A DNA stretch of 63,597 bases, counting the filler, from Intoshia linei (Eukaryota > Animalia > Orthonectida), in NCBI GenBank assembly GCA_001642005.1. It is 4 parts of 4 records of this genome, joined end to end, with 100 filler letters (N's around TTAATTAATTAA, not from the genome) between each part and the next. Parts side by side here need not be neighbours in the genome. Positions count along the whole stretch, not along the records: positions 40,252 to 59,943 come from LWCA01000719.1; 3 more parts are not named here. One strand, 5' to 3'. Position numbers and translations under genes: made by a program. Shown here piece after piece: positions 37,664 through 60,043 of this stretch. Every line of letters starts with the position of its first letter. The stretch's first letter is position 1. The notes under the pieces are model-generated. The model made no database searches. It had not been told where the DNA came from and was given only the letters and a program-made list of their open reading frames with translations.

Positions 37664-40600
37664 ATCCCACTTGTCATAATCTAGTAAAAATGAAACTATT
37701 TTTATCAATAAAAACACAGAAGTCTATTAATATATATTATATATGTATATTAATATGTATTAAAATTTAAATGAACAATACAGTATTTAAAAAAATTACG
37801 ATTCATCATTGCTAAATATTCGTAATCATATGAGATTAAATCAATCATATTCCGAAATTTTTTGATCGCATTATTCATAAATGATTCATATCTTTTTTTT
37901 ATTAAATTGATTTCTCGGTGTATTTATTTTTGGAAATAAACTTGCTTGGGTATCATAAAATATCATAAGCAAAAGTACACTAAAGTGTTATTGATTAATG
38001 TGAATAATGATAATATTTAATTTGACATGTGAATAAATTAAAATAGTCAATCTGTAATTTACCTACCATAAATTTTCATTTTATAAAAAATAAAAACTTG
38101 ATGTATAAGATATATTCCTCAAGATATAAGTAAATAAATATTTATAATATTTACTTCATCGCGTTTTTTCTGAAACATACATGGAAAACATGTAAATGCG
38201 CATGAATGTGCAATATATCTAGTGTAAATTAAAATATTAAATATCATCAAAACCAAAGTTATTTCGAAGTGGATTAGATTCTACTATAAAATTATTTAGT
38301 GTAAGAGTCACGTTTGATCCAATATAATTATTTTAAAAACCTTTAAAAATGCATATACGGTTTAACTAAGTCCAATACATTGTACCTTGTATAATTTATG
38401 TATTTCTTTATACAATTTGCTAAAAAAATTATCTATAATTATATTATTATTTATTTAATCTATGATACCACGTCCAAACGTTGGACAGTAATTTTAGATT
38501 ATTTTGAGATGAAAAAATTTTATGCTGGGTTCAAGTTGTGATGAATGTGATTATGGTTTATTAAGTTATTCATAGTTTATTCAATCTTTAATGTTTAATT
38601 ATAACAATAATTATGAATTAAAACAAAAGAATTTTTAATTAACAATTAAGTAAATTAAATATGACTGTCAACGATTCGTTTCAAGTATAAATACGTGGAT
38701 ACAATTTATTAATAATGATTTTGGAATTTTCATTTCCTTTATAAAATTAAACTATTTAACAAAAAATAATAACCGATCTAAATATTTTAATACACCTTGA
38801 ATTTTAAACAATGTAAATAACAGAAAACAAATAATTTACAGTTAATAAAATTTAAACATTTGTATTATAGATTCAAAATTTTTAGTTGAGAACTTGTTAT
38901 AAATTTTACATGTTCTGTATTAAATTTAAATTTAAATAAATGATTAAATTTAAAATACCAAGTAAACCGGAAATTGATGTTCGTATGACCTTGGGATCTC
39001 AAGCAAAAAAAATTAAAGACATGATTGATGATGATTTAAATTTGTTGAGAAAAATGAAACAAAGTGAGAATAGCCGCAGTTTGAAAGGATTCAACAATTC
39101 TATTAATAGTAATATTATTTTTTACATTAAAATGTTAATTTTTACCTTGAATTTCACTAAATATGTTTACATTTTTAACATTGATTAAATTTAATTTGAA
39201 GAAAATTGCGCCAATGATACTACTTTCTTATAAAATTTTGATATTATATTACTCTAAATATCAGTTATTTATTGTAAATATTATAATTTATTTCCTATTT
39301 CCATCGAAAATCAGAAACATTAATTTTATGTTTTGAATTTTTTACGTTTTGTGAACAAAAAACTGATAATTCATCAAATTTTTTCAAGTTCTTTTACTAA
39401 AATTTGAAAAAAAGTACATACTGAGTTTTAAAAAAAATTTTTACTGAGTCTTACTTTACGGAGTTTTTATTTTGTAAAACTGAGTTGAACACACTACTAC
39501 ATACATTAAAGATATTTATATCTTTGAAAATGTGTATTATGACAGTCATTCTCAAACTTTTTTAATAAGAGTCCCCTCAAATGCAATAATTTATAATTTT
39601 TTTTATAATAAAAATTTTGAAATAAAGTTTGAAAGATAATTATAATTACAGAAAAATATATTTGAAGTTACTAGTTTTAGTGTATTTATAAAATGTGGAA
39701 TTTAGAGTGTAAAGTTTAGACATTTAATAGACGTTTTTATAATTTTAAATTATATATCGTTAAAATGAATCATACAAATTTTTAAAAAAATCAGATTCAG
39801 CTGTCGGCACCGCGGCACACAATTTGAGAAGCACTGCATCCGGGTGTCACATTTTTGGATTAATTTGTTTAAATTAGCATTTATTTAAACAAATCATTGA
39901 TATACATTACATACAGTAACTATATTATATTGTCTATTCAACCCCACTCGAATAAGCACTTTTGGAATATAATATTCCAGATTATTTTATGTTTCACCAA
40001 AATGAACAGGATGCGTGCTATTCGTCCTTGATTCTTAAATACGTGTGACACCCTAGTAGTCATTGCCAGTTTACCCACTTCTAGTACGGTCAAAATCTCA
40101 TTTAACGAACGTCGAAATTTTATTTTCTATATAAATGCCTAAATATCTGGTNNNNNNNNNNNNNNNNNNNNNNNNNNNNNNNNNNNNNNNNNNNNTTAAT
40201 TAATTAANNNNNNNNNNNNNNNNNNNNNNNNNNNNNNNNNNNNNNNNNNNNCAGCATGCGTTTTCCATCTGATCTTGGCAAGTAAGCTATGCATAAACCC
40301 TTTTTATATTTTTTAATAATATTTTGAAACGCACATCGATAAATACTATAAGTTTTACTTATAAAACCCTGACTTTTTTTTTCTTTGCATTAAGACACGG
40401 CATTATATCTTTTTTTGTCACTTATTCGCGTCATTTACTATTCAAATAGTTATTTTTAATTTATAGATCATTAATAATTCATTACTTTTTTTGTTTTTAT
40501 GGATATTTTATTAATTTTAATTGAAATTATCAAGGTGCCTAAGACTTATATCGTTAATATTTTTAATATCGCAAACAAAACCGTATTAAAATGTATCTTT

Positions 40601-43001
40601 TTATGGGTAGTTTATGACATTAGCACGGTTATATATTGGCGAGATCATTCTTTAATTAAAAATTAAAAAAATTAGCTTTTGTTTTCACTAGTTGCACGGC
40701 TGATTAATAATTTTTTTTATTATATAACGCTAAAAAATAATTTTTCAGTATTTAAAATTTATTATCATGTAATCTCAACCATATATACCAGTATTTCTTA
40801 AACTACGGTTCCTAGAATTTTGCAGAGGATTCGCGAAATATTCAGTTAGAAAAAAATTATTTTTAGAAATTACTCAATACTGACGTAAAAAATAGAAATT
40901 TTGGCCCATATAATACTGGTTGTAATTTTAATTAGTTGTAATGAATTTGCTGTTTCTATCAGTCCACAATTTATTAATTGAAATGTAAACGTACCTATAC
41001 ATACGAATTAAAATATCCCGAAATTGAACCTCAAAGTTTTGTTCAACAAAACAATTGTTACATGTTTAAATTTTGTATATCTTCTAGCGAATAAGTTAAT
41101 GAATTAAAAAAATACTAACAAATGCAATTTATAAAAACTGAAGACCATTGTTTCAATAATATTTGCTTATTTATATTATTAGTTTATAATAAACTAATTT
41201 TAATGTATAGTCAATTTTACACTTTTAGCTGTTTCATTTGTTACTATAATATAATTAATTAAAATTTAATATTGATTTGTAGAATCAATGCAATGCTTAG
41301 TAAGCAAAATTTTTAAATGTATCATACTTACTGAACCATGTCCAGTGGACATTTAATCTGTTTGATTAAAATGTACATTGTAATTAATGTTATAATTTAT
41401 AAACAATTGAAAATTTGCCAATTTTTGACATTATAGTCAATTATTAATTAAATATTAAAATAAATGCGTGTAAAATTTATTAATTAACATTTAATTAATA
41501 ATTTATATTTACCCACAAAAATGCAAAATTATGTAACTGGTTACAATGTATTACATTGTAAATTAAATGTATAATATTACTATTTATATCAATTTAATTA
41601 CAATTAATTATTGGGATGCACAATGTCCCAACATTATATTGTATAATAATGTATATTTGATGCAATAGTCAACAAAATTTGTATTTGAAAGTATCATTAG
41701 CATATGGATATCAAATACATTTATTTAAACATTTTAATTATTTTATAAATTACAAATTGCATGTTTGTGATTAAAAGAATTATAAACAAATTAAAATATT
41801 AATACAACTTTAACATATAATGTGAAAGTTATTGATTATTTGAAAGTATAATTTTATTTACAATGTTTTGTATCTTTTAATAATAATTTAAAACTTGTTA
41901 ATATTTATTAATAAAAATACATTCCAAATATATCAATCAAAACGAATTCTGCAAGTCAATAAACCAACTATTGCTTAAAATGCAGTTGTATTAGTAAATA
42001 TGTTTTGGAACAAATACTCGACACTGTCATATGATAACCTCCATTAAAACATTTTGCATTGATTCAAAATTATTATTTGAAATTTGATAGTACATCTTGT
42101 GGAATGCTTAGTAATGCAGTCACGAATTTGGATTAGGAAAAAAGTAAAAGAATTTTAAATTCACAAATTTCAATAACATTTCAGTAATATTTAAATATTT
42201 ATAATTTCCACATTTTCACGCTCTAAATAGTGTGATTATTACTGAGTAGTAAGCAGTTATATTAATTGATTGAATTTGCATTATTTTTAAATCAAATTTT
42301 TGGAGCCATAAATTTATACCAAGTTTTTAATGATGTCTCATTAAAACATTACTGTACTGTAATTATAATAAAGATTTTTAAATTAGGTTTTTTTAAATTT
42401 TATCAAATTTTTATTTACGGTGCAGTAGAGTTTCAAGATTTAAAATTTCTTTGAATCAGTAATAAACAATAGATAATCGAATTAAATTTGATATGCTTGA
42501 TTGAATCAATCGAAATGGTGAAACGGAGCATGCGTAAAAAACAATATACAGGAATGTGTTGTATTCATTAGCTGAATCAACACAAAATTTAGAGTCTGAA
42601 TTTTATAAATTTGTCTTAATAAATAAAAACTGTACTCACTTAAAATATCATTATTCAGTGTCAATTATGCACCAATGAAGTAAGATTCAATCTAGCATTT
42701 TCTTTTTTTGTTAAGAGTTATCTAATTTTTCGAGGAATAAATTGTACAATTTTGTTGAATATTTATTGTTTAAAATTAATGTTATTAACTCAATATAAAG
42801 TTCATTATTTTACGTGATTGAAAGTTTTTTTTTTATGTTTACATGTTCAAATTATAATAAAATTTATTCGCTATAAATATGAATCATTGTATTTTGTAAA
42901 TTTTGACTTGAATTCAGTTAATATTACCAATAGTTTATATAATTAATTATAATTGATTGTCTGCATTAGTACGTTAGTACGTTATAAAGTAATAATCAGA
43001 A

Positions 43002-46000
43002 ATGGAAGAAAATCATGACAAGAATTCTAAAAAAGAACAAGAATTGCATTTTAATGAATTTATGGATAAAATTAATGCATCCTCTTCTAAATGTAATGTA
43101 CAAAAAAATAAATCTGAATTCAATTCATCTAATGTTACACCAAATTATTTAACACAACTCCTTAAAGACCAACAAACCTTAATAATGATGCCTGCTCTTT
43201 TTTTACATGTTGAAAGATTGTTAGAAGATGGTATATTTTTTTATTTATCATTTTTATGAATTATAAATTATAATTTAATTTTAAATTTTAAAAGCTAATA
43301 TTTCTGAGAGTCAACAAACCGTAGAAAAGTTAAAAAAAATTAAAAATATTTAAAATGTTTATCTGTAAAAAATAAAAACGTATATCATCCACGTACAGTT
43401 TTGTACCTTCACTATTGGCCAAAATGTTTTAAAATAAATCAATAAAACATTTTCATACATTGGTCCCACCTGTTAATTTAAAATTAAATTTTCAAATAAA
43501 ATTATTAATTGGCCAGCTATGTAATGAAATGTATTGATTTATATAGAAAATATGTAAATAATGGTGGAAATAGACAATTGTCAAACTACATAACTGGCAA
43601 AATGAGGATATTTTGTTATGCAGAATACTGTTTTCAGTTTTTTTAAATAATTACATACATTTAATTTAGTGAAATGTTTTTCTACAGTATTACGTGCTAA
43701 AATTGTTAGAAGTTTCTTAGTAACTAGGTTTTATTAGAATAATTATTACCCAAAAAATGAAACTGAAAGGATTTTGGTGAATAGTCATTGTTACACTAGA
43801 ATCGAACCTACCAGTTTTGAGACAGTAAAATCAAAAACAGAAAAATAAATGGAAATATGTATCCTAGTTACCATAATAATATCATATTAATATTGTTTTA
43901 TAAAAAAGGATTATTGCATATTTAAGATTATTAAGTAAACTATTTTGGGTAACTAATATTTTGTAAATATTTTGTACATAATTAAATATGATGAATCCGT
44001 TAAAACTATAAAAATATCAATTATAAAATTATCTTTAAAAAAAAGGGCAAAATTTACCCAATCATAGATTTTTTAAAGAACTTTTGTTATTTTTTTTTAC
44101 ATTTCAATCTACACGAGATAACAAAAATATAATCCCATCACACAAAATTATTGATCATCCTTTTTATCATCATATTTTTTAAATTAAGTTTTAATAATTA
44201 ACAAATATATATACAGTATTCTCTCCACAACTCGCCATTAATTTAAAATATAAACCAAAAGTTTTAAAACCATTTTAAAGGTTTAATTTGCTGTTTTTAT
44301 AGTATTAAATTCTTAAACCAACCGTGTATCTCAGCTAAATTTTATTTTCTTTCAAAATTCCCGAAATAATGGAACGGATGAAAATCCCGACCAGAGTAAA
44401 CCCTGATTCAGAGAGACTGATATAATTTAAAATACTTTTATAATACATTTCAGAATGTGCATTGTTGGTTATGAATAATGAACTTTTTTAATTTATGTGT
44501 CTATAAATCTTTATATTCTGATTTTTTCCACTATAATATTATGTAGATTATGTTACAAATTTATGTATTATTTATTATTTTATTTTATAAAATTATTATT
44601 AAATATGACTTAAATGATAATTGTATTAAACGTAATTTTGATTTATTAGAAATTTTACGATCGAGAGCCGTTTTATATCAAAGCAATTCTGCCCATGATA
44701 TACATAATTTACCAGAACCCTCTGGTACACCTACTATGTTAAAAGAAAAGATTTACATACCTGTCAATCAATATCCAGAAGTATTTAATACATTTATATT
44801 ATTTATAAACAGAATGCTAGTCTTTCAGCAGCTAAAAATCTTAAATTTCACTATCGATATAATTATGTTTTTTATGATAATGTAATAATTAAAAATAATT
44901 GATAAAAAAATCAAAACATTTCAAATTGTCACTCTTAATTTTTTTTGAATTAATCATTATTATTGATTAACAATTAATTGATATATATAATCGTTTTGTT
45001 GTGATTCAAACCAACCATTGAAAAAACTAGTTTAATTCATCATAACGCGTGTTACGTGCACGTATATGTAATAATTTTTAAAGCAGCAATGCTGGTAGAA
45101 TACCTGATTATATGCTGTTACATGTCAAAGCAACCCATACCAAAAAACTACCAATCTCTAAAATCAAAGGAATAAACCTCTTTGACTAATCCCTGCTATT
45201 AAATTATTTTATTATATTATTCCAAATTTAGTCTTTTATTTAGTTAAGTGAATCTTAACCTATGCTCATCGGCGCACTGGTGCGTGATTATTGTTAAGGT
45301 GCACCGCAAAACTATTTTAGTTTAGTTTATAAGAAAGTTTTTTTTTTATTTTATTTTTTATTTAAAAAAATTTTATAAATTAGTTTCAATGTTTTACACT
45401 GACAATTCTCAGATGAAAATTTTTTAATGTACTATTCAATATAATAATGTATTTACATTGAATAATATGGTTAATTCCAAAAATATGAATACTTTTTATC
45501 ATACATCAAAAGTTCTTTACTTAATATTAGTTAAGATAAATTTGATTGTTTTTATTATTATTACGATTTTATATTTTTTGCATATTTTTGAATATCTATG
45601 TGTTTTTTCTTATAAAAATTTAAGGTGCGCTCCAAATTTTTATCTATTTCACAATTTCGTAATAAAAATTTACAAATAAAAAATGTTAAGGCACTGCTTT
45701 AGATTATAAAATAAATTAATTAATTTACAAACAATATGCATTACATTAAATTGCGTTTATGTCATTAAATATTAAGTAGAATCAATTAAATAAGATTTTT
45801 ATCAATGATAAATATAATACATAATGTACATGTAATTATTAATAATTATATGAAATGATTATTATTATATTTATAACTAAATTGACTGTTATGTAATACA
45901 TACAAACAGCACCTAGCTCTGCCGAGGCCACATTCTTATTATACCAAAAAAATAAATTCACATTGAAAATCTAACTTAAAAATCCTACTATTCACTATTA

Positions 46001-49000
46001 TCAATCCTTTATAGGACTGGTTCCCAAACTTGTTTCAGGTGGAACCATCATATCACATTACTTTTTACTTTAAAATGAATTATTCCATCTTAATTTTTTG
46101 TTTGTTAATATTTGCGTAAATAATTTTAAAAACAATTGTTTTCCAATTTTTTTAATTTATTAGACAGAATGTGTGTATAATATTAAAAATAAAGTAAGAA
46201 CAGTCCAATCCAAAAATTGTCATAAATAACATAAATTCCAGAAAAATAAATTATAAAAAACCTATTTTGTCATTTTCAATGTGATAAATTATCACAGATA
46301 ATATATATTCAGTACCAATTTAATAAATACTTAAAATACAATTATGTATTAATAATTAACCAAATTTTCATTTTATATTCATATTTCAGTCGAATTTTAA
46401 CAATATTGCAAAAGATTGTAATAAATATAAAAATGATATTAACAAAGTTGGATTACTTTTAGTTTCGTTGTTATAGTTTATATATAAAGTTTATTAAAAA
46501 TGTTTTGAAAATGAGAATTTCAAATTTCAAAATTGCGTAGCAATGAAAAAAAATCAAAAGGAATGAATTATATAGATTTTCACCCATATGTCTTTATTGG
46601 AAATGTGTAGAGGTTCAAGGCACATTTTTTTGATATTGTAGGATCAATATTTATATTTTCAATTTTTATTTTAATCGAAATATTTGAAAAATATTGGTTG
46701 ATAATATATTAAAATTATTTTTCATCGGGAATGGGTAGATTTATGGATTTGAAATTTTGTAGTTATATCAACTGAATAAGCTCTATCAGAATAATCTTTC
46801 TTTTTAATTTTCGAAGCGTTAATTATTTCACATATTTTGTTTTAATATAATATTTCGAAAAAAAATATATGAATATTAAAATGCTTTTTTGTCCGTGAAG
46901 GCATCAAATGTGGACTTTGTAAAATTCTAAGACTGGTAGTTATTGAAATAAACGATAACACACATACAGACAAACAAAGTATATTATATAAGTAAGGAAA
47001 GGACAATTACATCAAGTAACATTTATAAGATATGGAAAAGTGCGACCTTGTATACTTGTAAGCAATTTTAAATGATTTTCGTAGATAACAAAATAATTAT
47101 ATTATTTATAAATTAAAAGTATAAATATTTATAAACTTTTAATTTCATCAATTTTATCGTACTGCGTCGGTAGAAACCTCTGTATCAGTAACGGCAAAGG
47201 TGTCAGTAATGATTCAATTCATGACGATTTAAGTTTTTGTATAATAATTTCACATTCTAATCATTTAATTTAGTACAACTTTGTTGGTCGTATTTTGGGA
47301 CCAAGAGGAATGACAGCTAAACAATTAGAACAAGAAACAGGATGTAAAATTATGGTTCGTGGTAAAGGATCTATACGAGATAAAAAAATGGTACATTACA
47401 CATTGTGTAAAAGTGTATTTAAAATTTCAATTGAAACTAATTATAAATATATATAGGGTCGTATACGGACGGAATAAATAGATTCCTTCCCTAGAATACA
47501 TTAGAGATTGTCACACCTGGACTCCCCACATTTTTGGGATCAAAAATAAACTTTCTCTTAAATAAAAGCCACCAAATCTTCAAATATGATCATTTTGAAG
47601 TCTATTCTCTAGAAAAGTGGTTCTCTAATGGGACCTCTCGACCCATTGGGTATTTAAAACTATATACCGACATGATACGAGTATTATATACTGAAAATAT
47701 TCGGAAATTTAATGAGATTCAAATAAAATATAAAAAAAATTTATCAACTTTTGTCTATTTGTATAGGAGAATTTTTAATATTTATTACTTAATTGCCAGA
47801 TGTTGGGAATTTATCCTAAAGCCTAGACGACCGCTATATTATTATTTTAAAAATACCATATTTATCCCAGCATTAATAAAATTTAATAAAAAATAATATT
47901 TCAAACCCTCAGGGAAAAATCGACTTTTACCAATATTTTTTTGAAAAATCCGATTTTACCAAATCTTATTAGAAAAAACATTAAATTTTATCATAAATGT
48001 TTTATATTTTATGTTTCCTTTGGAGTCCATTAAAAATAAATTTATTGAAATGGGGGCTGTACAGTGTACACTATTTGAATGGGGAACCACTGCTCTAGAT
48101 CGACATAGATTTGAGCGATTTATTGTTGGAGCGACAAAATCGTCGATTTTTTAAATTTATTATTTTGAGTTTTTCTTTAAATTTTAAAAAATTTTGAAGA
48201 TAATTATAATTTTAGTTCAAAAATTTGGTAGTGTTCCAATATTACCAATTAATCGTTTACTTATGTAAAATAGAATGTTTGTGTGTCTGTAACCGTTTAT
48301 TAAAAAATTGACAGTCGTATAATTAAAAAAACCCAATTTATACTACAATTTTCCCAGAACATTGTTATATCTATTTTTAGTAACCGATTTTGAGTCTTTA
48401 TGGTCCAACCCCACTTTTGCCTTTGTTTTAAAAATGAAAAATGTCCTAAAATTTTATAAAAAATAAATTATAGATTATTTTTAAAATCATAAGTAGTACA
48501 GTAGATGGAAACCTCAAAGAAGTTCATGATGAAAGGTGAACTTACCATATTAGAGACTGTAAAATTAAAAATAAGCCAATAACAATGTTTTGCAAATAAT
48601 TCATGTCATATGGCTTTAGACACCTCTCCACGAGTCTATGTGAATAATTATTCAGTTTAAATTTAACACGCAAAATAGTTGATATTCAAGAATATAATGT
48701 TTAAGAGGCTCATCTGGTGAAAATGAGACCCTATTTTACAAACATTTAATAGACTCCTAACCCCGCCGAAAAGAGGGTGTCGAATACGGTAAGTTCGGCT
48801 CAAGTCTCTGGTGACCGGAACCTGTTCATAAAGTCCTGATTACATGTATCGGTCAATAATACTGTTATATCAACTATGCATTATCTTAGTTTTAACATGT
48901 TTGTAATTTTTGTATGCAATTATAATTGCGTGTGTACTATAATAGTTAATAACAATAATTATTATTCAGATAAGTTTTACATTTCGAACAGACTGTACCC

Positions 49001-52000
49001 AGTCAAAACTTTTGATAGTTTACAGCTGTATATAATAAATGAATAAAACTAATTTAGGAAAGTATAAACCGAGGAAAAGCCAACTGGGAACACTTAAACG
49101 ATGATTTACACGTTCTTATAACAGTGGAAGACACAAACAACCGAGCAGACGTTAAGATGCAATGTGCCATCAGAGAAATAAATAAATTACTTATACCAGC
49201 AGTAAGTTCATAAAAATATAAATATTTATTGCTTTACAATAATAAGGGGTAATTGAAAAAAAATTTTCAAAAATGTTTAAAAATCATCAAATGTATCATT
49301 CAAGTAAGAGTATTTTATAGATTTTGCTGCATCAGTTTCTGACATGGCAATATCCGTTAAATTAGTTAATTGAGTGTTAACAGATTCTAATGATTCATTT
49401 GAAGGAACTGTTCTCATAAATTCTGGAACATCGTAAATATGTAAAGTTCCATTACTACTACCAGCAGCAATGGAGCTACTGTTGGAATTCCACTGAATTT
49501 TATTAAAAGAAAAAGGTACTGATGTCAAATGTGAGAAGCTTGTAGTTTTAATAGGAGAACTAGTTTTTAATGCTTTCAAATGATTTATATTATCATTTAT
49601 GGTTTCATCTTTTTCTGGGAGATCTGGGCTTTGAATTTTTAGAGATGTGGATGGTCTAGTATGAAAACCTGCATTTGAATTTTTACTTGTTTTGGCTATT
49701 GGTGTATCCAAACTTTTTGAAATATCCCACAATGATAATTTGACAATATCAGAAGAAGAACAGAATAAAGCTGGGTTAGTTGGAGACCATTGAGCTCCAT
49801 AAAAGTATGATGTATTTTCTTGGTTTTCTAATCTATATATTGATTTTTTGGCTTGGGAGTTCCAAATTTCGAGTGACCAATCAAAAGACGTAGTAAGAAA
49901 ATAATTGGAAAAATCAACAATATCGTGTTGACCGGGATGGACATCAATTGATGTGACGGCAGAGCCGTGTCGAGTAGAATATTTTTCAACATTTTGACAA
50001 TTATCATGAAAACTAGCGCCATATATAGAACCGTCGTCTCCTCCAAGTAAAAAGTTGTTGTGATCATTTGACATTAACGAAAAACAAGCACAACTAACAG
50101 ATTTTCGATTTGAAGTTAGTTTAATAGACTCCTGAGGTTGCGAAAGCATGTCAATATTCCATAGACATAGCATACCGTTGGTAGAAATTGAAACTAAATT
50201 ATATACATTGCCTGTTCCAATAGCTTTTAAGCAATACACGGGATTAGTATGAAAGGAATTGATATTGGCAGAAATAGAACTATGTTGTACTGGCGATCGA
50301 TGATTAGACCGCATATCCCATAAAACAAGTTGTCCAGAATAGGTGCCGCCAATGATTAAATTTGGATGAAATGGAGCAAAAACGAGTGATAAAACGGTAG
50401 AATGGCATGTGAATGTGTATTCTGGAGATTTTTTAGGGTATTTAAGATTCCATAGCATAACAAGTCCATCACTATTTAAAACTGAGCATTTAGAACTAAC
50501 TGGACAACCAGAAACGAGTGAATTGCTATAATTTTCCATATAAGAACAAGCTAAAAGTTCAGGGTGGTAAGGGGACCAATCAATTGTGGATATGGGTCGT
50601 TCCATAGTAATATTTTGTTCTTCGTAAGAAAAAACACGAGAACACGTCAACGTCTGTGTGTCAGTTTTAGTATATCGAGAATGTTTGTGTCTTTTTATAT
50701 GTTTACCGGTTTTATTAGGTACACTAGAATTGAAGTCCTCCAAATCTTCATCAAAAATTAAACTATGGGATTCGACCGGTTCAATATCAGAATCACTCAA
50801 TTCGTACTGTATAAACACGTTAGCAGACGTTTCTTCTATGCTAAGAATTCTCTCTATGACAGTTCCAGCCCTCCTAGTAAACTTTGAAAATTCAGCATTA
50901 TTTGTGTATTTCATGAATTCATCATTTGTCAAAATTTTAATTTTTTCGACGTCACTCAAATCTTTACTAGGGGTACAAGTCGAATTTTCATTAGATGTAG
51001 ATTGTGGCTCAGCATATTGTCTTGATTCATTACCGAGTGCAGTCATTTTACCGTTCGTTACATTCATGGATTCATTTTTGGTTATATTACTACTCAATTG
51101 GTAATCTAAGGAATTTTCAGTTTGGACACCTCGTTCATATACAATTTTTTCTATTGAGGGTATGTTTTGAATATCTACATTACTCATCTCTAAATTTTTG
51201 ACCGGGATAATTTCAAATTTTTCCAGTTTATCAACAAAATCTGTTGGTTTAATATTTTCAGTTTCTGGTTGAGGAACAATTTGAGATTCTAATGAAATTC
51301 CCATGGTACATTGCAATAATTTATCCATTTCTTCACGTAAATCAGTAGATGATTTTTCGGTTGTAATATCAACGTTTCCATCTAAATCTTTTGTTTTGTT
51401 TATTTCTCGTTCTTTTCTTATCAATTTTTGACGTCTGTATTCTACTAAACGTGCTTTCTTTTTTTCCAATTCTTTTTTCAAATTTGACATTTCAATAAAA
51501 TTAAAGTTTATTGTAACAATTTATATATTATAGCGACCTCAAGCAACATTTACATCCAATTTGTAGTGTTGTTTTTGTTTCTTGATTTTAAATTTATAAT
51601 TCATGTAACATGTTTATTTAGTTTCAATTTATTTAAATTAATTGAATTCTATAAAAATACATTTATGAATTTTATATCAAGATTTTTATTTATATTTATA
51701 TTTTTATTTAAACCTTAAAATAGCGGATCTGAGACTAGACCAGTAGTTCACAAAATCGGTTCCACTGAAGGGCATACCGATTCCGTTGATAATTAACGAT
51801 TAAAAAAATTTTTATTATTTTTCAGGATTCTAGAATATTTTTGTATAAGCAGGGCTAGCTGAAATTCTGGTATCAGTAGAATTTTTCTGGCACTGGTACT
51901 AACAGTAATTCCAGGTGGTGCCAGTCCTGTGTATAGGATGTTTAAAATTTAAAATGTTTCCTCTAAAATTTACCAAATAAAATATTTATTTTCAGAGAAT

Positions 52001-53284
52001 AGTCATGAAACTATCATACCCGTTTTTAGCCGTGCTTGGATCAATAAATTTAAAAAATTTACTGAAAACCACATCCCTAACCAGAACCGAACCTACCAAG
52101 CTCGAGGCCGCCCGAAAATGAAAAATAGGCCTCTAAAAAAAATTCGAAAACGATACATAGCGTCATAGCCCCTTATCAACCTCTCCAAGTCTTTTTAATA
52201 GACATTTATTTAACATACAAAATAATTATGAAATTTAAAAATATAATTTTTTAAAATTCCATTTGAAAAAATGGGTCCCCATTTTGCAAAAAATTCGTCG
52301 AACCCATCCTAAATAAGGTACCGATTTACATGTATGGGTATGTTCGGCACTGATACGAACCCTATATTTCATATTAGGGTGATAAGATTGTGTTTTTCAT
52401 CTTAAACGGGACCGCTAAACCCATACATCTAAATTTGTCTTATAAGGAAATGTTAAATTTTTGTCATATTTGAGAACAAATTGCTGTTTTATTTATAATA
52501 AATAACATTTACAATCATCAAGCTAAAGAAACTTTAAATATTTAGCCTGAGGGTGAAGATAATTTAAAGAAAATGCAATTGATGGAATTGGCTATAATGA
52601 ATGGAACATATAGAGATAATAATACCGTACAAAATATGCAATTCTCTCCTCGTAATAAAATTTTTTTTTAACAATACATATTAAATGTAGAAATGAACAA
52701 TTACCAACTTTATCAACAGTCAATGCGAAGTCAACTTCCAATGTCAAACAGATATTATAATAACAATCTATTAACGAATCATAATATTGTTTCTCATATG
52801 AATATGCAAGATACAAACATAATGTACATGCCATTTATTGATCCTTTCAACCCATACAATCCTTACATTGAATACAGTCAAATCCAAGATGTTATGAAAC
52901 AAACTGGTATTACATATAGACTTGTCATATGTATCTGTTTAGTCGGGAAGCCGTGTTAAAAAAATATTTTCTCGATGCCGTTTTTAATATTTAATTTCAG
53001 TGGTCATATTAAATCTAATTTTCTATCTGGTTTTTGAATCATGATCGATGACGAGAAAATTTTGATTATTAGTTCACTATATTTAAAATGCTTTTTTTAG
53101 TTTTTCAAATTTATTATATGCTGTGATTTTTTTAAAATACGACAAGTCTAGTCATATTTGTCATCATTATAAATAAAAATACATTATAGGTTCATTAAAC
53201 ATGTCAAATCAGATAAACAAATCACCCAGTTCTTCTACGTGTTCAAATCAATATATACAAAGTGAAAAATCTCCTTCTCGGTGA
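43002..53284 (+). CDS. QKI: STAR-family KH-domain RNA-binding protein (Quaking / held-out-wings-like), 7 exons, ~345 aa
   Basis: Exons joined at GT-AG sites with consistent phases: 43002-43230, 44650-44780, 47274-47390, 49058-49201, 52546-52651, 52691-52906, 53190-53284 (1038 nt, ending in TGA). Translation gives QUA1 ([10 protein letters not shown]...[14 protein letters not shown]), KH ([49 protein letters not shown]...[18 protein letters not shown]), QUA2 ([24 protein letters not shown]) and a Tyr/Pro-rich tail. The last exon is less certain. Confidence 0.9.
45877..46998 (-). mobile_element. Non-autonomous Helitron, same family, in Quaking intron 2
   Basis: Extensive reverse-complement similarity to 23029-24327, including the 3' hairpin and the 5' end (ataagtaagga). 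Confidence 0.8.
47274..47390 (+). CDS. QKI: Quaking-like gene exon 3 (KH GxxG loop)
   Basis: tttag|TAC AAC TTT GTT GGT CGT ... AAA ATG|gtacat encodes [39 protein letters not shown]. Absent from the ORF track. Confidence 0.93.
47615..48092. mobile_element. hAT (Charlie-like) MITE in Quaking intron 3
   Basis: Ends AAGTGGTTCTC / GGGAACCACTG; TSD CTCTAGAA / CTCTAGAT, matching the NTCTAGAN target typical of Charlie elements. Confidence 0.75.
49058..49201 (+). CDS. QKI: Quaking-like gene exon 4 (C-terminal half of KH domain)
   Basis: tttag|GAA AGT ... CCA GCA|gtaagt encodes [48 protein letters not shown]. Confidence 0.92.
49225..49230 (-). promoter_or_regulatory. Candidate poly(A) signal of the dynein IC gene
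   Basis: TTTATT on + is AATAAA on -, about 46 nt downstream of the DIC stop codon. Confidence 0.45.
49277..51490 (-). CDS. DYNC1I: Cytoplasmic dynein 1 intermediate chain (WD40), single exon, nested antisense in Quaking intron 4
   Basis: 737 aa. N-terminal helix [16 protein letters not shown], light-chain site YERGVQT, roadblock-binding [16 protein letters not shown], and DIC-type WD40 repeats ([74 protein letters not shown]). Confidence 0.93.
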   Translation of the reverse strand: MSNLKKELEKKKARLVEYRRQKLIRKEREINKTKDLDGNVDITTEKSSTDLREEMDKLLQCTMGISLESQIVPQPETENIKPTDFVDKLEKFEIIPVKNLEMSNVDIQNIPSIEKIVYERGVQTENSLDYQLSSNITKNESMNVTNGKMTALGNESRQYAEPQSTSNENSTCTPSKDLSDVEKIKILTNDEFMKYTNNAEFSKFTRRAGTVIERILSIEETSANVFIQYELSDSDIEPVESHSLIFDEDLEDFNSSVPNKTGKHIKRHKHSRYTKTDTQTLTCSRVFSYEEQNITMERPISTIDWSPYHPELLACSYMENYSNSLVSGCPVSSKCSVLNSDGLVMLWNLKYPKKSPEYTFTCHSTVLSLVFAPFHPNLIIGGTYSGQLVLWDMRSNHRSPVQHSSISANINSFHTNPVYCLKAIGTGNVYNLVSISTNGMLCLWNIDMLSQPQESIKLTSNRKSVSCACFSLMSNDHNNFLLGGDDGSIYGASFHDNCQNVEKYSTRHGSAVTSIDVHPGQHDIVDFSNYFLTTSFDWSLEIWNSQAKKSIYRLENQENTSYFYGAQWSPTNPALFCSSSDIVKLSLWDISKSLDTPIAKTSKNSNAGFHTRPSTSLKIQSPDLPEKDETINDNINHLKALKTSSPIKTTSFSHLTSVPFSFNKIQWNSNSSSIAAGSSNGTLHIYDVPEFMRTVPSNESLESVNTQLTNLTDIAMSETDAAKSIKYSYLNDTFDDF
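51850..51929. mobile_element. 80-bp minimal hAT-like MITE
   Basis: CAGGGCTAGC...GCCAGTCCTG with TSD TGTATAAG / TGTATAGG. Confidence 0.6.
52546..52651 (+). CDS. QKI: Quaking-like gene exon 5 (QUA2)
   Basis: tttag|CCT GAG GGT ... encodes [24 protein letters not shown]. Followed by a 39-nt GT-AG intron (52652-52690). Confidence 0.92.
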
Positions 53285-53415
53285 TTTTGATTAATACTTT
53301 GAATACATCAGGATTTTAATTTTTTTATAGTTAAAGTTTTTTATTTTGTTATTCTATTTTAAATAAAAAATTTGTAATTTTTTTGTTAATTACACAGTAT
53401 AACACTCAATAATAC

Positions 53416-54510
53416 AGTCAGACCTGTATATATTGAAACCTAATATAGTGAACATTTTGTAGAGTGAACATTAAAAATTATTTCGTTAACAAAAAATTCA
53501 CTTTATATGGAAGTATAGTGAACAATACAATAATGAACGGTGAACACCTTTCAAAATAAAGGTAATATTCTATTTTTGAATAATCTCATTGTAATTTGAA
53601 TAAATTAATATGATTTGCACTTTATTTTTACATTATATAATTAACGATAAAAAGCGTAAAAATTTTTAGCTAGAGGTTTTAAGAGTTTAGATTTTCAAAA
53701 ATTAAATGTTTCCTATAAAAGTAACAAAGAATCGTGAATGACATTAAATATTTTTGAATCATGGTTGTCACATTTAAATTTATGGATGAAAAATGAAGAT
53801 AGAAAAATTATTTCAATTCTAGACAACGCAATTGTTCACCCAAAATGTACTCAATATTCAAATGTAGAGTTGTTTTTTCTACCTCCGAATACGACTTCTA
53901 AGATACAACCACTCAATCAAAGAATTATATACTCGTTCAAGGTGCAATACAAGCGTATTATTAACATAATTATACTTATTGAAATGGAAAACCCAGAATA
54001 TGAAGATCTGGATTATCAAAATTTAAATTATACAAAAGTATTTTGTATATTCTCATGGCGTGGGAGAATGTTTCAAAGAAATGTATAATAAATTGTTTTA
54101 AAAAAGCATAAATTTAAAAATTAGTACATTGGTATATCGAGATGATGCCATAATCGATAACCAAGCTATAGACAATAACGAATTAGAATCTAACCCGCTA
54201 AATAGTAACTTAGATGATGATTTTCCAGCATATGATACAACAATAACTACAGATTTAGGTACTCCTTCAAAATATTGATCTAGGTACCGACAGTGACGTC
54301 GAATCCGTATAATCAAATGACTCTCAGTGTCCCATTGAAACGACAATACATACTTACGAAGCTTTATATATTTTTAAACAGTTGCAACAATGGTACATTG
54401 AAAATTATCCGAATGGAATTAATAATATACTTAAAGTGATAAATGATATATCGGAAAAATTGTCGAGACAAGCTAAAATAACTGATTATTTTTCTACATT
54501 AAAAAAAATT
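53416..54510 (+). mobile_element. Tigger/pogo transposon remnant (DDE_1 domain part)
   Basis: TA|CAGTCAGACCTG terminus. Degenerate ORF MTLNIFESWL...ILDNAIVHP...LFFLPPNTTSKIQPLNQRII has stops and frameshifts. Confidence 0.82.
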
Positions 54511-54530
54511 TAAAACATTGAATATAATTT

Positions 54531-54580
54531 TAACCCTAATACTCTCAGTGTGACCATATGGTCACACAACATTACAATTA
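54531..54580 (+). mobile_element. piggyBac-like left terminus (also at 59894)
   Basis: TTAA|CCC...actc.cagtgtgaccatatg.tcacacaacattaca occurs at both loci. Confidence 0.5.
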
Positions 54581-55689
54581 TAAAAACACGTATCAAACTG
54601 AAACAAAGTTAATTAAATATGAAAAATTAAATTAATTAGTATATTATATAACATTCGAGTATATTAGTTATGAGTTTTCACCGATTAGCCTCCTGTGTCA
54701 CTGACAGGGGGCCAAAATGATTTTTCAAAGCAAAAAAAAATTCCCTGAAATACTTTGCGGTTTTTATATATTAGCATTAGGTTGACTGTTAAGTAATGTT
54801 GTCATGTTTACATAACAGTTTACATGAAATCGTGACTTATTCAGATTGAAATTTTTTGTGTGTATTAACAGGATACAACTGTACCACCTGTAAATTTTTT
54901 TAAATTTAAATTTATGATAATGTTTATGATTTTAAAATCCGTATACCGAGTCGCATACCAAGATCTGACGCAGAGAGAGATCAATTTGGAACATTCATTG
55001 TTTTGACCAAAATAAAATTTATATCTCCTCTCCTACTACCTTCCCTACCTCTTCCCCATTTCTATGGTCAGAATCTGTTTGTCTATCCATGTTCTTTAAT
55101 ATCCCATATGATCATTTTTTTGTAAAATTCTAATTTTACCAAATCTGATAAGAAAAAACCTATTATTCCAACCCCCAAAAATAATAATTCAATTTAACCA
55201 CCCTTAAGGAAAAATTCCCTTTTTCCAATATTTTTTTAAAAAACACGATTTTATCAAATTTTATGACAAAAAACCTCTAATTTCATACAAAATAAAAAAT
55301 TAAAACGTAAAAAATGGTCGATTTTTATGAATCAAAAATGTGACACGAAGCAATAAAACATTTTGTTATACAACATTTAAGTAAACAATCCCCTTTTATC
55401 TGTATTTACTTTTAACTTTTAACAATAGTTTTTACTAAGTTTTGAAAATTTAAGAGTACTTAGTTGTACTGTATTATATTAAAAAAACTAAGTTGAAAAA
55501 GTCAGTTACTAGGATTACATACATGAACATACTAAGGTCGCATGCGGCCCACGGGCCTTAGTTTGCCTACCTCTGCACTAGTGTATAACACTAATAGTGT
55601 TAACATATATGAAAAAATAAAGTTCAAATCCAAATTATAAACCAATTTCGAACTATCTTTATTGGAAATATATTTAATTTTGTTTCAAA

Positions 55690-58600
55690 ATGTCTGATTT
55701 GTACGACGAATTTGGAAATTATATAGGCCCAGAAATTGAGTCTGATAATGATTCAGATGATATCGAAGAATCTGAAAATGAAGAAGTAATTTATTAATTA
55801 TAAATTTTAAAATAAAGGGTGATTTTAATTTTATATATCGAAAAATTTATTCACTTACTATTAATGATTATGCTTATGAAACAGCAAGGACTATGTATTA
55901 TACATAAAAATTTAATTATTGATAATTATTTAAAACTTATATGTTTTTTTTGTATATTTTTATAGTATTACATTGAAAAATTAGTACACTACTTTTTGTT
56001 TATATGAAGTTCATATTATATACATATATATTCATATTATGAACTAAAAAATAAAATAATACATACGTATAAACGATAGCATGATATTATAAAAATTGTT
56101 ACATTTAAAATCTTTTTATTCTAACAATGCAGTTAAGCTATTACCAAATACATATGCAAATACCAGTTCGTGAATTAATTTTACTGGTTCATGGAAATTT
56201 TTCTTGACAATATTTAAAATAAAAACATAAAATATCGCATAATTATTAAATTATCGTATTTTTTTAAATTTTAGCTAGATAATATGGTTTTACTAGTTCG
56301 CAGGAAATTTTATAGTAAATTTTTAATTTTCAAAATACATAGGCAACATATCAATCTGAAGTTCAGTAGGGACGTAGAACACTAAAAATTATTTTGTTTA
56401 AATCCATAAAGTATAGAATCTATAATATAGATGTTTTATTTATTTTAGAATTACAAAAATATTTTTTACCTCCAAGTACCCTAGGATAAATCATTTTAAA
56501 TTCGTAAAGAATCAACTTTTCATTGTTACTACAAACATTTTAGTCGTATTTATTATGTCTTTATTTTGTTTTAAAAGATGTGGATCTGAATTGACTATTT
56601 TTGTGGAATGAAATATGGATTACGAAAACAGTAGTTAAACATTGTCTAAGTTTTACTGAAACATTTTACATTGACCTTTTTTTATTGTACTTGTATTTAG
56701 AACCAAACCTAACATGCCTAACAGTCACCTAAAAATGAAATATAAATAAAAAATTCGCAAAAGATAATTCGTAGCATATAGCTCTTGTTTTAACATTTTA
56801 AATTTACACAAACTTAATAATAGTTTTTTAATGCTCAATTTGGAAAAATGATTCCCATTTTACATAAATTTCGTCGAGACCAGCAAAGAGGGGCCACGAA
56901 CAGTACAGCGAAGAACAGCCACACATAGAGTTCGGCTCATATTATGTTGATCATTAATTTGGCACGTTTAGGATGTTGAAATGCAAAATGAAGAAGAAGA
57001 AGATGATAAACGAATAGTTTTACATGAAGATAAAAAATATTATCCTACTGCAGCAGAAATTTATGGAAAAGATGTTGAAACTATCGTTCACGAAGAAGAT
57101 GCCCAGCCTATCACAGAACCAATTGTTGCTCCTTTAATACCAAAGAAATTTTATATTCGACACGAAGAAAAGCCTGACACGGTATATGATTTGCAATATC
57201 TTGTAGACATGTCAAACGCTCCAGATTTGATCAGTAATAACATTAAATAGTCGTTACTTTAATTTTTTTAGGAAACGTTGCATTTATTGGCCATTTACAT
57301 CACGGAAAAACATCATTTACCGATTGTTTGGTGAAGCAGACGCACCCCATGTATTTCATATCTGAAGATTACAATTTTGGAACAATTGATAAAGAAGTCC
57401 GATTTACAGACACTTTATATTTAGAGCAGGAACGGGAAATGAGTATAAAGGCCACACCGATTAGTTTGGTTATGCCCGATTTGAACGAAAAGTCATACTT
57501 GCTTAATATCATAGATACACCTGGACACGTCACTTTTTCTGATGAAGTTACTGCGTCGTTACGTCTTGTTGATGGTGTCGTTATTTTCATTGATGCTTCT
57601 GAAGGAATTCTACTGAGCACTGAACGATTGTTAAAACACGCTTTGAATGAAAAACTAGCTATAACTGTCTGCATCAACAAAATGGATAGATTAATCTTGG
57701 AATTGAAATTGCCACCTGTAGATGCTTATTGTAGAATACGTCAAATTTTGGACCAATTTAACAGTTTAATTGCGGTGTATTCAGACGAAAGTACCCCAGA
57801 TTGTCACGTTTCTCCGTTATTAGGAAATGTTTGTTTTGCCAGTTCTTATTATAGATTTTCGTTTACACTTGAATCGTTTTCTCTTCTCTACGCTAATATG
57901 TATCCCGGCTTCGAACCTGTGGATTTAGCAAAACGTTTGTGGGGTGATATGTATTATAATGAAACCTCTCGAAAATTTTCTAAAAAGCCTTGGAATCCCA
58001 ACAACAACAGAACATTTATTGAATTTATATTGGAACCTATTTACAAAATTTTTTCTATGGTAGTGGGGGATGTCGACACCAAGTTGGATTTAGTCCTGTT
58101 AGAGCTTGGTTTAAGAATATCTGCTAAACAAAAGAAAATGAACATTCGGCCTTTATTGCGTTTGATTTTTTGTCAATTTTTTAAAAATAATTCTGGATTC
58201 GTTCAAATGGTTAGAAAGTGTGTACCATCTCCATTGGAAAACGCATCTAACAAAGTCCAACATATATATACGGGCAATTTAGATACTTCAATTGGTGAGG
58301 GCATGAAAAAATGTGACACTACAGCAAATTTAATGGTCCACACAACTAAAATGTACCCGTTTAATGATGGCTCGCAATTTCGAACTCTGGGGCGTATTTT
58401 TTCTGGCAATCTTATGACTGGTCAAAGAGTAAATGTTCTTGGCGAGGGATATTGTGAAAACGATCAAGAAGATTCAAGAATTCAAACAGTTGGAAGGTTA
58501 TGGTTGCCTTCGGCTAGATACAACTTTGAAATAAATTTAGTATCGTCTGGCATGTTGGTTTTTATAGAAGGTATAGATGCATCTATTGTAAAAACAGCAA

Positions 58601-59169
58601 CTGTCGTTTCAGCAGTTAACGTCGACGAATATTACATATTTCGACCCCTTAGTTTCGATACTTGTTCTGTAATTAAGATTGCTGTAGAACCGGTTAATCC
58701 TTCAGAATTGCCTAAAATGCTTGATGGTCTCCGTAAGATAAATAAAACATACCCATTGGTTTCCACAAAAGTAGAAGAATCTGGAGAACATATCATTTTG
58801 GGTACTGGAGAAATTTACCTTGATTCAGTTATGTACGATATGAGAAAATTATACTCTGAAATTGATATTCGCGTTTCTGATCCAGTCGTTTCATTCTGTG
58901 AAACGGTCGTAGAAACATCAAATTTGAAATGCTTTGCGGAAACTCCCAATAAAAAAAATAAACTGACAATGGTTTGCGAACCATTAGAAAAAGGAATTGA
59001 TTTAGCCATTGAGGAAGGTAAAGTGGATATCAATTGGCCTCGTCGTAAATTATCACAATTTTTTCAGACACAGTATGATTGGGATCTTTTGGCTTCTAGG
59101 TCTATATGGGCGTTTGGACCAGATCATATTGGTCCTAATATTCTTGTGGACGAAACTTTACCATCTGAG
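55690..59169 (+). CDS. EFTUD2: U5 snRNP 116-kDa GTPase EFTUD2/Snu114, 3'-partial
   Basis: Exons 55690-55785 ([15 protein letters not shown]...), 56972-57233 ([18 protein letters not shown]...[14 protein letters not shown]) and 57272-59169 ([69 protein letters not shown]), 752 codons in frame. Ends at donor gag|gtatga; no C-terminal exon was found in the window. Confidence 0.95.
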
Positions 59170-60043
59170 GTATGATTTTATCTAATAATTAACTAAACTC
59201 TAATATTGTATTTTTCCTTAGTGGTTTGGTGGAAATGGCTTTTCATATTTTTAGTTGGTATATTTATTCAGGGTTTGGTTAAAATGACTAGTTTAGTTAG
59301 TGTTGGTTGGTTGGGTCGGGATTTGTTATAATTTGATTTTAATGTATTTTTTTGGGTTTTAGTTTGATTAAAATGGTATTTTTTCAAGTTGAATAATAAT
59401 AACACTTAACTAGAATTTGATACGATTTCATAAATTTTATATTTGACTAATAGCAAATTTTTAATGAGAATTATTTTTACTAATTAGAAAATGTAATTTA
59501 AATTTTTGGTAATTTTATTTAAAATTTATGAAATACAAACATGATCAAGAAGAGTTATTTATTATTATACCGGTAACTTCTTAGAAAATGAAAAATTTGC
59601 ACACCCGTTGTGTTTAATTGAATTTCAAAAATTTTTATGATTCTTGTATGACAAATTGAGCATGTTACCTATATGTATTTAAACTTTAAATTCAATACGG
59701 AAAATTATTTCTTTTCGAAAATTCCATAAAATTTGACAATTTAGTGTTTTGTAAAAACATACTTTTTCTAAAATACAAATAAAAAATAAAATTTTTCTCA
59801 ATTCTTCTCTGTCATGTTATATATTACGTCAGGAAAGTTAATTTAATCGTAAATTAATTAATTAATCTTTTTTTGAGATCAATTTATTAATATTAACCCA
59901 TATACTCCCAGTGTGACCATATGATCACACAACATTACATTTANNNNNNNNNNNNNNNNNNNNNNNNNNNNNNNNNNNNNNNNNNNNTTAATTAATTAAN
60001 NNNNNNNNNNNNNNNNNNNNNNNNNNNNNNNNNNNNNNNNNNN

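Follow-up and report, generated by a model that had tools for sequence, protein, structure and literature searches.

Genes lying within the introns of other genes have been described in animals, from 2mit in an intron of Drosophila timeless2 to the sets of such genes from human and fly, and one account of Drosophila puts intronic genes at about 6% of its genes (PMC3786989). Antisense single-exon genes are the usual class of nested gene. The locus of the orthonectid Intoshia linei presented here very probably has the same layout, with a gene of a single coding exon, encoding a dynein intermediate chain (DIC), placed antisense within one intron of a predicted Quaking/STAR gene. It is thus the commonest sort of gene-within-gene, found in the intron-poor genome of a parasite. 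In contrast to known nested genes, the internal gene encodes a core subunit of cytoplasmic dynein and not a young or tissue-specific product, its 3′ end lies directly beside the host 5′ splice site, the stop codon being 75 nt away from the exon, and most introns of the surrounding genome are reported to be tiny, with a median of 57 bp (PMC6543705).

The host can be compared with the STAR (GSG) proteins Quaking, HOW and GLD-1, whose QUA1, maxi-KH and QUA2 segments are all present and collinear in I. linei and are likewise followed by a Tyr/Pro-rich tail; unlike in these relatives, the tail is without a family match and one of the introns houses another gene. The internal gene is predicted to encode the same architecture as vertebrate DYNC1I1/DYNC1I2 and Drosophila short wing, with an N-terminal helix, a linker for light chains and, at the C-terminus, a WD40 propeller, whereas the lack of introns in its coding sequence, five insertions of its own, an identity of about 30% and an undetected Dynein_IC2 domain set it apart from known DYNC1I genes. 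With orphan retrogenes it shares an intron-free structure in a normally intron-rich family, a new location and the lack of a closer paralogue in the database, but it carries no visible poly(A) remnant or target-site duplication, and a retroposed origin is hypothetical.

Results

The analysed window is 63,597 nucleotides long (filler included) and was joined from parts of four records of assembly GCA_001642005.1; all positions count along it. The part that bears the locus is the whole contig LWCA01000719.1 (19,692 nt), an end of which falls in a repeat. No tRNA or Rfam family was found in this contig, host intron included, and the portion of the host intron outside the DIC gene shows no repeat elsewhere in the contig.

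Table 1. Predicted features of the STAR gene and of the DIC gene within its fourth intron.
Feature	Position	Strand	Description
STAR exon 1	43002..43230	+	Start codon, QUA1 dimerisation helix; ends in phase 1; 5′ splice site GTATAT
STAR exon 2	44650..44780	+	Last part of QUA1, then the KH linker; AG/GTATTT boundaries
STAR exon 3	47274..47390	+	First half of KH, with GPRG loop
STAR exon 4	49058..49201	+	Second half of KH; 144 nt, phase 0; AG before, GTAAGT after
Host intron 4	49202..52545	+	3344 nt, GTAAGT...TTTAG; holds the entire DIC gene
DIC candidate poly(A) hexamer	49225..49230	-	Sole AATAAA/ATTAAA from DIC stop codon to host exon 4
DIC single-exon coding sequence	49277..51490	-	737 aa, ATG start, TAA stop; from ORF scan
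Presumed DIC promoter and 5′ UTR	51491..52545	-	1055 nt, DIC start codon to host exon 5
STAR exon 5 (QUA2)	52546..52651	+	TTTAG before
Host intron 5	52652..52690	+	39 nt, GTAATA...TGTAG; short, of the type reported as typical for I. linei
STAR exon 6	52691..52959	+	Tyr/Pro/Asn-rich C-terminal tail and stop codon; frame continuous with exon 5

The host is predicted to be a Quaking/HOW/GLD-1-type STAR gene of about 331 codons, with six exons spread over positions 43002-52959 of the plus strand (Table 1). All five of its introns are of the GT-AG type with consistent phases, and four of them are long (1.4-3.3 kb) compared with the median reported for the genome. The exons were searched one by one and not as a joined protein. 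Exon 1 matched Pfam STAR_dimer (E 2.1e-9) and the QUA1 of GLD-1 (3k6t_A, residues 3-36), exon 2 matched GLD-1 (4jvy_A, residues 40-77, E 3e-4), and exon 3 matched Pfam KH-I_KHDC4-BBP (E 7.7e-13), Quaking (4jvh_A, residues 91-128, E 2.4e-18) and GLD-1 (E 1.8e-19); over the two KH-domain exons (3 and 4), Pfam KH-I_KHDC4-BBP and KH_1 were matched. Exons 1-5 fall in order on residues 3-35, 40-77, 78-115, 117-164 and 165-188 of GLD-1 (4jvy_A) and on residues 8-41, 66-90, 91-128, 131-177 and 179-204 of Quaking (4jvh_A). The tail encoded by exon 6 has no Pfam match and no detectable family.

The two exons that flank the DIC gene are adjacent on Quaking. Residues 2-48 of exon 4 align with Quaking up to residue 177 (E 1.1e-17) and residues 2-27 of exon 5 align from residue 179 onwards (E 5.7e-9), which implies residues 130-177 and 178-204 for the two exons, so that the 49201/52546 junction is gap-free across the dynein gene. 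The evidence for this junction consists of homology, reading frame and splice signals, and we infer that it is used and that both genes are transcribed.

The coding sequence of the nested gene is intron-free, a single uninterrupted exon of 737 codons, and an open frame of this length in DNA of about 31-35% GC cannot have arisen by chance. The best match of its protein in the PDB is DYNC1I2 (290 bits, E 4.6e-85), compared with 74 bits (E 1.2e-19) for the best axonemal intermediate chain and 49 bits (E 3e-12) for that of dynein-2 (WDR34), and the C-terminal WD40 propeller is closest to DYNC1I, as opposed to the axonemal DNAI1/2/3/4 or the dynein-2 WDR34/WDR60. DYNC1I orthologues from fish and Schistosoma cover 94-98% of the query at about 30% identity, and in a five-species alignment the protein is collinear with its orthologues from end to end. 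Judged by these similarities, the product is a full-length cytoplasmic dynein 1 intermediate chain.

The N-terminal helix of DIC is the region that binds p150Glued/NudE. In the five-species alignment its residues M1, K5, E7, L8, E9, K11, K12, L15 and R19 are invariant; the N-terminus aligns with DYNC1I2 from residue 5 (domain score 16.2, i-E 0.03), and Pfam Dynein_IC2 (PF11540) gave no match in the protein at E values up to 0.01. Residues Y118, Q123 and T124 of a putative TQT-type LC8 site in the linker are invariant in the five species, a second such sequence, KTDTQT, occupies residues 274-279, and the WD40 motifs are conserved. The protein also carries five lineage-specific insertions, which were considered as possible hidden introns in two cases. 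A 13-aa insertion was rejected as an intron for want of a good GT...AG pair. The largest insertion (53 aa) contains an in-frame GTAAAA...CAG stretch of 168 nt, which is stop-free, has a GC content of 0.31, resembles the surrounding coding sequence and lies 6-12 residues from the nearest crustacean intron position; we read it as coding, and it could be a hidden intron.

The DIC gene fits tightly against the host at its 3′ end. Its AATAAA follows the stop codon by 47 nt and is 24 nt away from the boundary between exon 4 and intron 4, which would put DIC polyadenylation on or astride the host 5′ splice site. On the other side, an ORF scan of the presumed promoter region found no frame above 50 aa. 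The upstream sequence of roughly 1 kb and the AATAAA are hints that DIC may be an independent transcription unit.

The initial annotation of this DNA had described a 737-aa DIC reading frame lying whole within the intron on the opposite strand, an in-frame joining of the KH and QUA2 exons across a 3.3-kb GT-AG intron, about 1 kb left for a DIC promoter and an interval free of assembly gaps. These structural claims hold up: the frame runs from ATG to TAA at 49277-51490 on the minus strand with the DYNC1I2 match given above, the contiguous Quaking residues, the phases and the GTAAGT...TTTAG signals agree with the proposed junction, 1055 nt separate the ATG (51490) from exon 5, and there is no N in 49202-52545 or anywhere in the 19,692-nt contig.

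The DIC orthologues of two crustaceans consist of at least 14 coding exons over 30 kb in one case and of at least 12 over 12.5 kb in the other, in agreement with the earlier statement that animal DYNC1I genes are normally intron-rich. Within the WD40 region, the I. linei gene lacks at least seven of the intron positions seen in the crustaceans. Another gene of the contig also has a long exon, since EFTUD2 exon 57328-59175 (1.85 kb) spans residues 161-754 of hSnu114 as a single exon. As I. linei is moreover reported to have only about five introns per gene (PMC6543705), intron loss is not peculiar to DIC on this contig.

Discussion

In the arrangement that we favour, splicing of the STAR pre-mRNA would link position 49201 to 52546 and bring the KH and QUA2 segments together in one RNA-binding domain. 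The 3344-nt intron discarded in the process would carry DIC on the opposite strand, complete with roughly 1 kb of separate upstream sequence and a DIC poly(A) signal 24 nt away from the 5′ splice site of the host. Because the flanking exons encode adjacent parts of one conserved domain, DIC probably moved into an intron that was long beforehand, in a STAR gene of ancient origin. The locus would illustrate how, in a reduced genome with mostly tiny introns, the few long introns of regulatory genes can house another gene, the guest in this case being an essential motor subunit from which every intron is gone.

How DIC lost its introns is a separate question, for which retroposition and loss of introns as reported for the lineage look alike at this locus and are about equally probable. 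In the first case, a processed DIC copy landed antisense in the STAR intron, gained a promoter and replaced an intron-rich parent that was later lost, a history to which we assign somewhat less than an even chance. It has the appeal that a single event accounts for the new location as well as for the total absence of introns, and it is in line with the many coding exons and WD40-region intron positions of the orthologues and with the protein database, in which the best non-self match is about 30% identical and no closer paralogue is found. The marks of such an event are missing, however: the minus strand shows no run of A from the DIC poly(A) signal to host exon 4, and no target-site duplication was found, the longest strings common to the DIC flanks being 11 nt of A and T only, as expected by chance in such AT-rich DNA. 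Retroposition is therefore unproven. Further arguments against it are the mere 75 nt between the DIC stop codon and the host exon and the long intron-free exon of the neighbouring EFTUD2, which is clearly no retrocopy. Of the earlier proposal that the gene had been retroposed or had lost all its introns, the intron-free coding sequence stands by comparison with the orthologues, whereas a mark of retroposition is lacking; and the significance then attached to the locus, although based on the right structure, was too high in view of the long EFTUD2 exon and of the intron-poor genome reported for this species (PMC6543705). A comparison of the locus across related species could help to separate retroposition from ordinary intron loss.

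Most likely, STAR and DIC are independent units that share a stretch of DNA, though the two genes may be transcribed head-on and their transcripts may overlap in antisense where the host has its 5′ splice site. A long shot builds on the predicted DIC poly(A) site at the boundary of exon 4 and intron 4: transcription of DIC, or its 3′ UTR antisense to GTAAGT, could choose between two host products. The two products would be the full protein with KH and QUA2 and a read-through form ending 12 nt into the intron, which would keep the QUA1 dimeriser and lose QUA2. If true, what an RNA regulator gene produces would be tied to a gene for a motor subunit. As regards the interference or co-regulation suggested as possible in the initial annotation, the DIC transcript shows no enrichment of Quaking response elements, either as ACTAAY (4 versus 2.3 expected) or in the bipartite form (1 versus 0.7 expected).

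The gene models of the public record imply no nesting. Its STAR model (43002-49213, 233 aa) runs 12 nt into intron 4 to an in-frame TAA, and its EFTUD2 model (52546-59175, 905 aa) starts at 52546 without an ATG. Were these models right, STAR would end as a KH-only protein at 49213 and the exon at 52546 would belong to EFTUD2 or be a dead fragment. Both the NCBI calls and the TAA speak for this reading, and a truncated KH-only STAR product is formally possible. On the other hand, exon 5 takes up Quaking exactly where exon 4 leaves off (177 to 178), the STAR domain includes QUA2 as an integral component, the sequence at 52546 marks a splice acceptor instead of a start codon, and EFTUD2 has a conserved N-terminus of its own, encoded by an exon at 55690 that matches positions 1-30 of Pfam EFTUD2 and is closely preceded by a stop codon. 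We therefore consider the public models very unlikely to be correct; the split STAR and the extended EFTUD2 look like a predictor artefact around the nested gene. Gene predictors are generally unable to model nested genes.

A misjoin of the DIC gene into the STAR locus is less probable still and can practically be dismissed. In its favour, this is a short-read draft contig of 19.7 kb that ends in a repeat. Against it, two false joins within one intron would be required, both leaving the flanking exons correctly ordered, on the right strand and in frame; moreover, the interval contains no N, no repeat lies on either side of the DIC gene and the base composition is continuous.

With the nested arrangement as the preferred reading, the practical worth of the analysis lies in a correction of the annotation, since in the public record STAR stops short of QUA2 and its last exons are joined to EFTUD2. 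Left uncorrected, these models would mislead orthonectid surveys of spliceosome genes or of RNA-binding proteins. Within the last STAR exon, an extra splice at about 52906 is possible.

Nested arrangement of the DIC and STAR genes

Genes nested within other genes are a well-documented feature of animal genomes, and the locus described here is a fresh example of this already known arrangement. The initial annotation had placed a whole, intronless gene for the cytoplasmic dynein 1 intermediate chain (DIC) antisense within intron 4 (49202-52545) of a STAR gene of the Quaking/GLD-1 type; this arrangement is real and its coordinates are exact with respect to the ORF, exons, frame, splice signals and freedom from N's. 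One account gives about 6% of Drosophila genes as intronic genes (PMC3786989), and large surveys found no consistent correlation in expression between nested genes and their hosts (PMC3192792). The piece carrying the locus, 40252-59943, is identical to contig LWCA01000719.1 of assembly GCA_001642005.1 in full (19,692 nt). It has zero N's throughout and a GC content of 21-35%, and its proteins are far diverged from all relatives; GC content, protein divergence and the 39-nt STAR intron described below are all consistent with the orthonectid Intoshia linei.

The six plus-strand STAR exons were placed by stop-to-stop translation and splice signals and were compared one at a time with solved structures. 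Their lengths (229, 131, 117, 144, 106 and 2+267 nt) maintain a single frame of about 331 codons, and all five introns are GT-AG. GLD-1 (4jvy_A) is collinear with exons e1 to e5 (residues 3-35, 40-77, 78-115, 117-164 and 165-188), and in Quaking numbering, with unaligned end residues included, e3 ends at 129, e4 covers 130-177 and e5 starts at 178. At the sequence level, the predicted junction 49201/52546 is thus supported by gap-free homology, by frame and by good splice signals (GTAAGT; TTTAG). For the sixth exon, placed by frame continuity, no Pfam match was obtained. The plus-strand intron preceding it (52652-52690) is only 39 nt long; if it were retained, the frame would continue to ...SPRNKIFF and a stop, yielding an alternative short C-terminus right after QUA2.

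Features of the STAR, DIC and EFTUD2 genes (window positions)
Feature	Position	Strand	Content and closest structural or domain match
STAR e1	43002-43230	+	QUA1; Pfam STAR_dimer, E 2.1e-9; Quaking 4jvh_A 8-41
STAR e2	44650-44780	+	QUA1 end, linker; Quaking 4jvh_A 66-90
STAR e3	47274-47390	+	KH first half; Quaking 4jvh_A 91-128
STAR e4	49058-49201	+	KH second half; Quaking 4jvh_A 131-177
STAR e5	52546-52651	+	QUA2; Quaking 4jvh_A 179-204
STAR e6	52691-52959	+	Tyr/Pro-rich tail; frame continuity only
DIC ORF	49277-51490	-	737 codons, ATG to TAA
EFTUD2/Snu114 gene	55690-59175		N-terminal exon at 55690, second exon ~56980-57240, then one 1.85-kb exon

Among solved structures, the nested ORF matched cytoplasmic dynein 1 intermediate chain 2 (E 4.6e-85, 290 bits), compared with at most 74 bits for axonemal intermediate chains and 49 bits for WDR34 of dynein-2. 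A word search of 5.8 billion proteins left the DIC protein as the sole member of its own 90% cluster; its nearest relatives, about 30% identical, are the DYNC1I proteins found in fish, crustaceans, insects and Schistosoma, and several of these proteins cover 94-98% of the query. A five-species alignment extends from end to end and shows conservation of N-terminal helix residues (K5, E7, L8, E9, K11, K12, L15 and R19), of the predicted light-chain site Y118/Q123/T124 and of the WD40 signature GGTYSGQ.VLWD. Pfam reported only WD40-type families on this protein, and Dynein_IC2 was not among them.

Five insertions are unique to this lineage (residues 191-199, 236-258, 270-280, 323-335 and 608-660), the largest of which, 53 aa, lies in the WD40 domain. 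It contains an in-frame, stop-free GTAAAA...CAG stretch of 168 nt (49519-49686, minus strand; CDS nt 1805-1972) with a GC content of 0.31, similar to that of the surrounding DIC coding sequence. Since 56 codons without a stop have an estimated chance of only about 1% in non-coding DNA of such composition, this stretch is probably coding rather than a short intron.

Corrected gene models

The main product of the finding is a corrected gene model. The NCBI record calls STAR at 43002-49213 (233 aa) and EFTUD2 (Snu114), the gene downstream, at 52546-59175 (905 aa), and both calls appear to be wrong. The last 12 nt of the former run into intron 4 and end at a TAA. The latter begins, with no start codon, at the splice acceptor that precedes QUA2 in STAR, so that the 905-aa model probably fuses the 3′ exons of STAR to EFTUD2. 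The conserved N-terminus of EFTUD2 itself, which matches positions 1-30 of the Pfam EFTUD2 family, has a stop codon just upstream. Gene predictors are generally unable to model nested genes, and we read the split models as the predictor's reaction to DIC, by which the host was cut and its orphaned exons were attached downstream. The EFTUD2 ORF stops at 59175 with homology persisting to its last residue, and the final ~220 residues of the protein are absent from the contig.

Origin of the nesting

As the residues encoded by STAR exons e4 and e5 adjoin each other within a single ancient domain, we infer that DIC entered an intron of an already existing STAR gene. I. linei is reported to have about five introns per gene, with a median length of 57 bp (PMC6543705), and the few long introns among tiny ones form a natural insertion place in this genome. 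The other long STAR introns measure 1419, 2493 and 1667 nt, and intron 4 without the DIC CDS would be ~1.1 kb.

In two crustaceans, the DIC gene is split into at least 14 and at least 12 coding blocks over 29.9 and 12.5 kb, respectively. Of the positions at which introns interrupt the WD40 region in these two genes, at least seven fall on uninterrupted sequence here. A wholly intron-free CDS of 2.2 kb is probably uncommon in I. linei. Long intron-free coding stretches are nevertheless present elsewhere on the contig, given that the EFTUD2 exon 57328-59175 spans hSnu114 residues 161-754 unbroken, with both introns of that gene on the contig lying near its 5′ end. Retroposition, to which we give somewhat less than even weight, would account for the new location and the intron loss in a single step, and database proteins include no closer DIC paralogue; however, no poly(A) tract was found at the flank toward host exon 4 and no convincing target-site duplication in the DIC flanks.

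Possible interplay of the two genes

DIC and its host would most likely act independently of each other; when the host transcript is spliced, the spliceosome would discard the antisense DIC sequence along with intron 4. Only 75 nt separate the DIC stop codon from the host 5′ splice site, and the sole AATAAA between them (49230-49225, minus strand) predicts cleavage at ~49195-49215, on the exon 4/intron 4 boundary. This layout makes it plausible that DIC transcripts overlap the host 5′ splice site in antisense and that polymerases meet head-on. Quaking-binding motifs showed no enrichment in the DIC transcript.

Repeats on the contig

A diverged interspersed repeat occurs in STAR intron 3 (47885-47998) and upstream of EFTUD2 (55180-55293, also 55116-55159), with 75-86% identity. 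The STAR-EFTUD2 spacer holds the broken remnant of a DDE_1 transposase of the pogo/Tigger type (53738-54088; Pfam E 1.4e-15). Two copies of a 56-nt repeat, 89% identical and containing the palindrome GTGTGACCATATGGTCACAC, lie at 54525-54580 and 59888-59943. The second copy forms the extreme contig end, and the assembly therefore broke within the repeat, which may represent a transposon end tied to the nearby DDE remnant.
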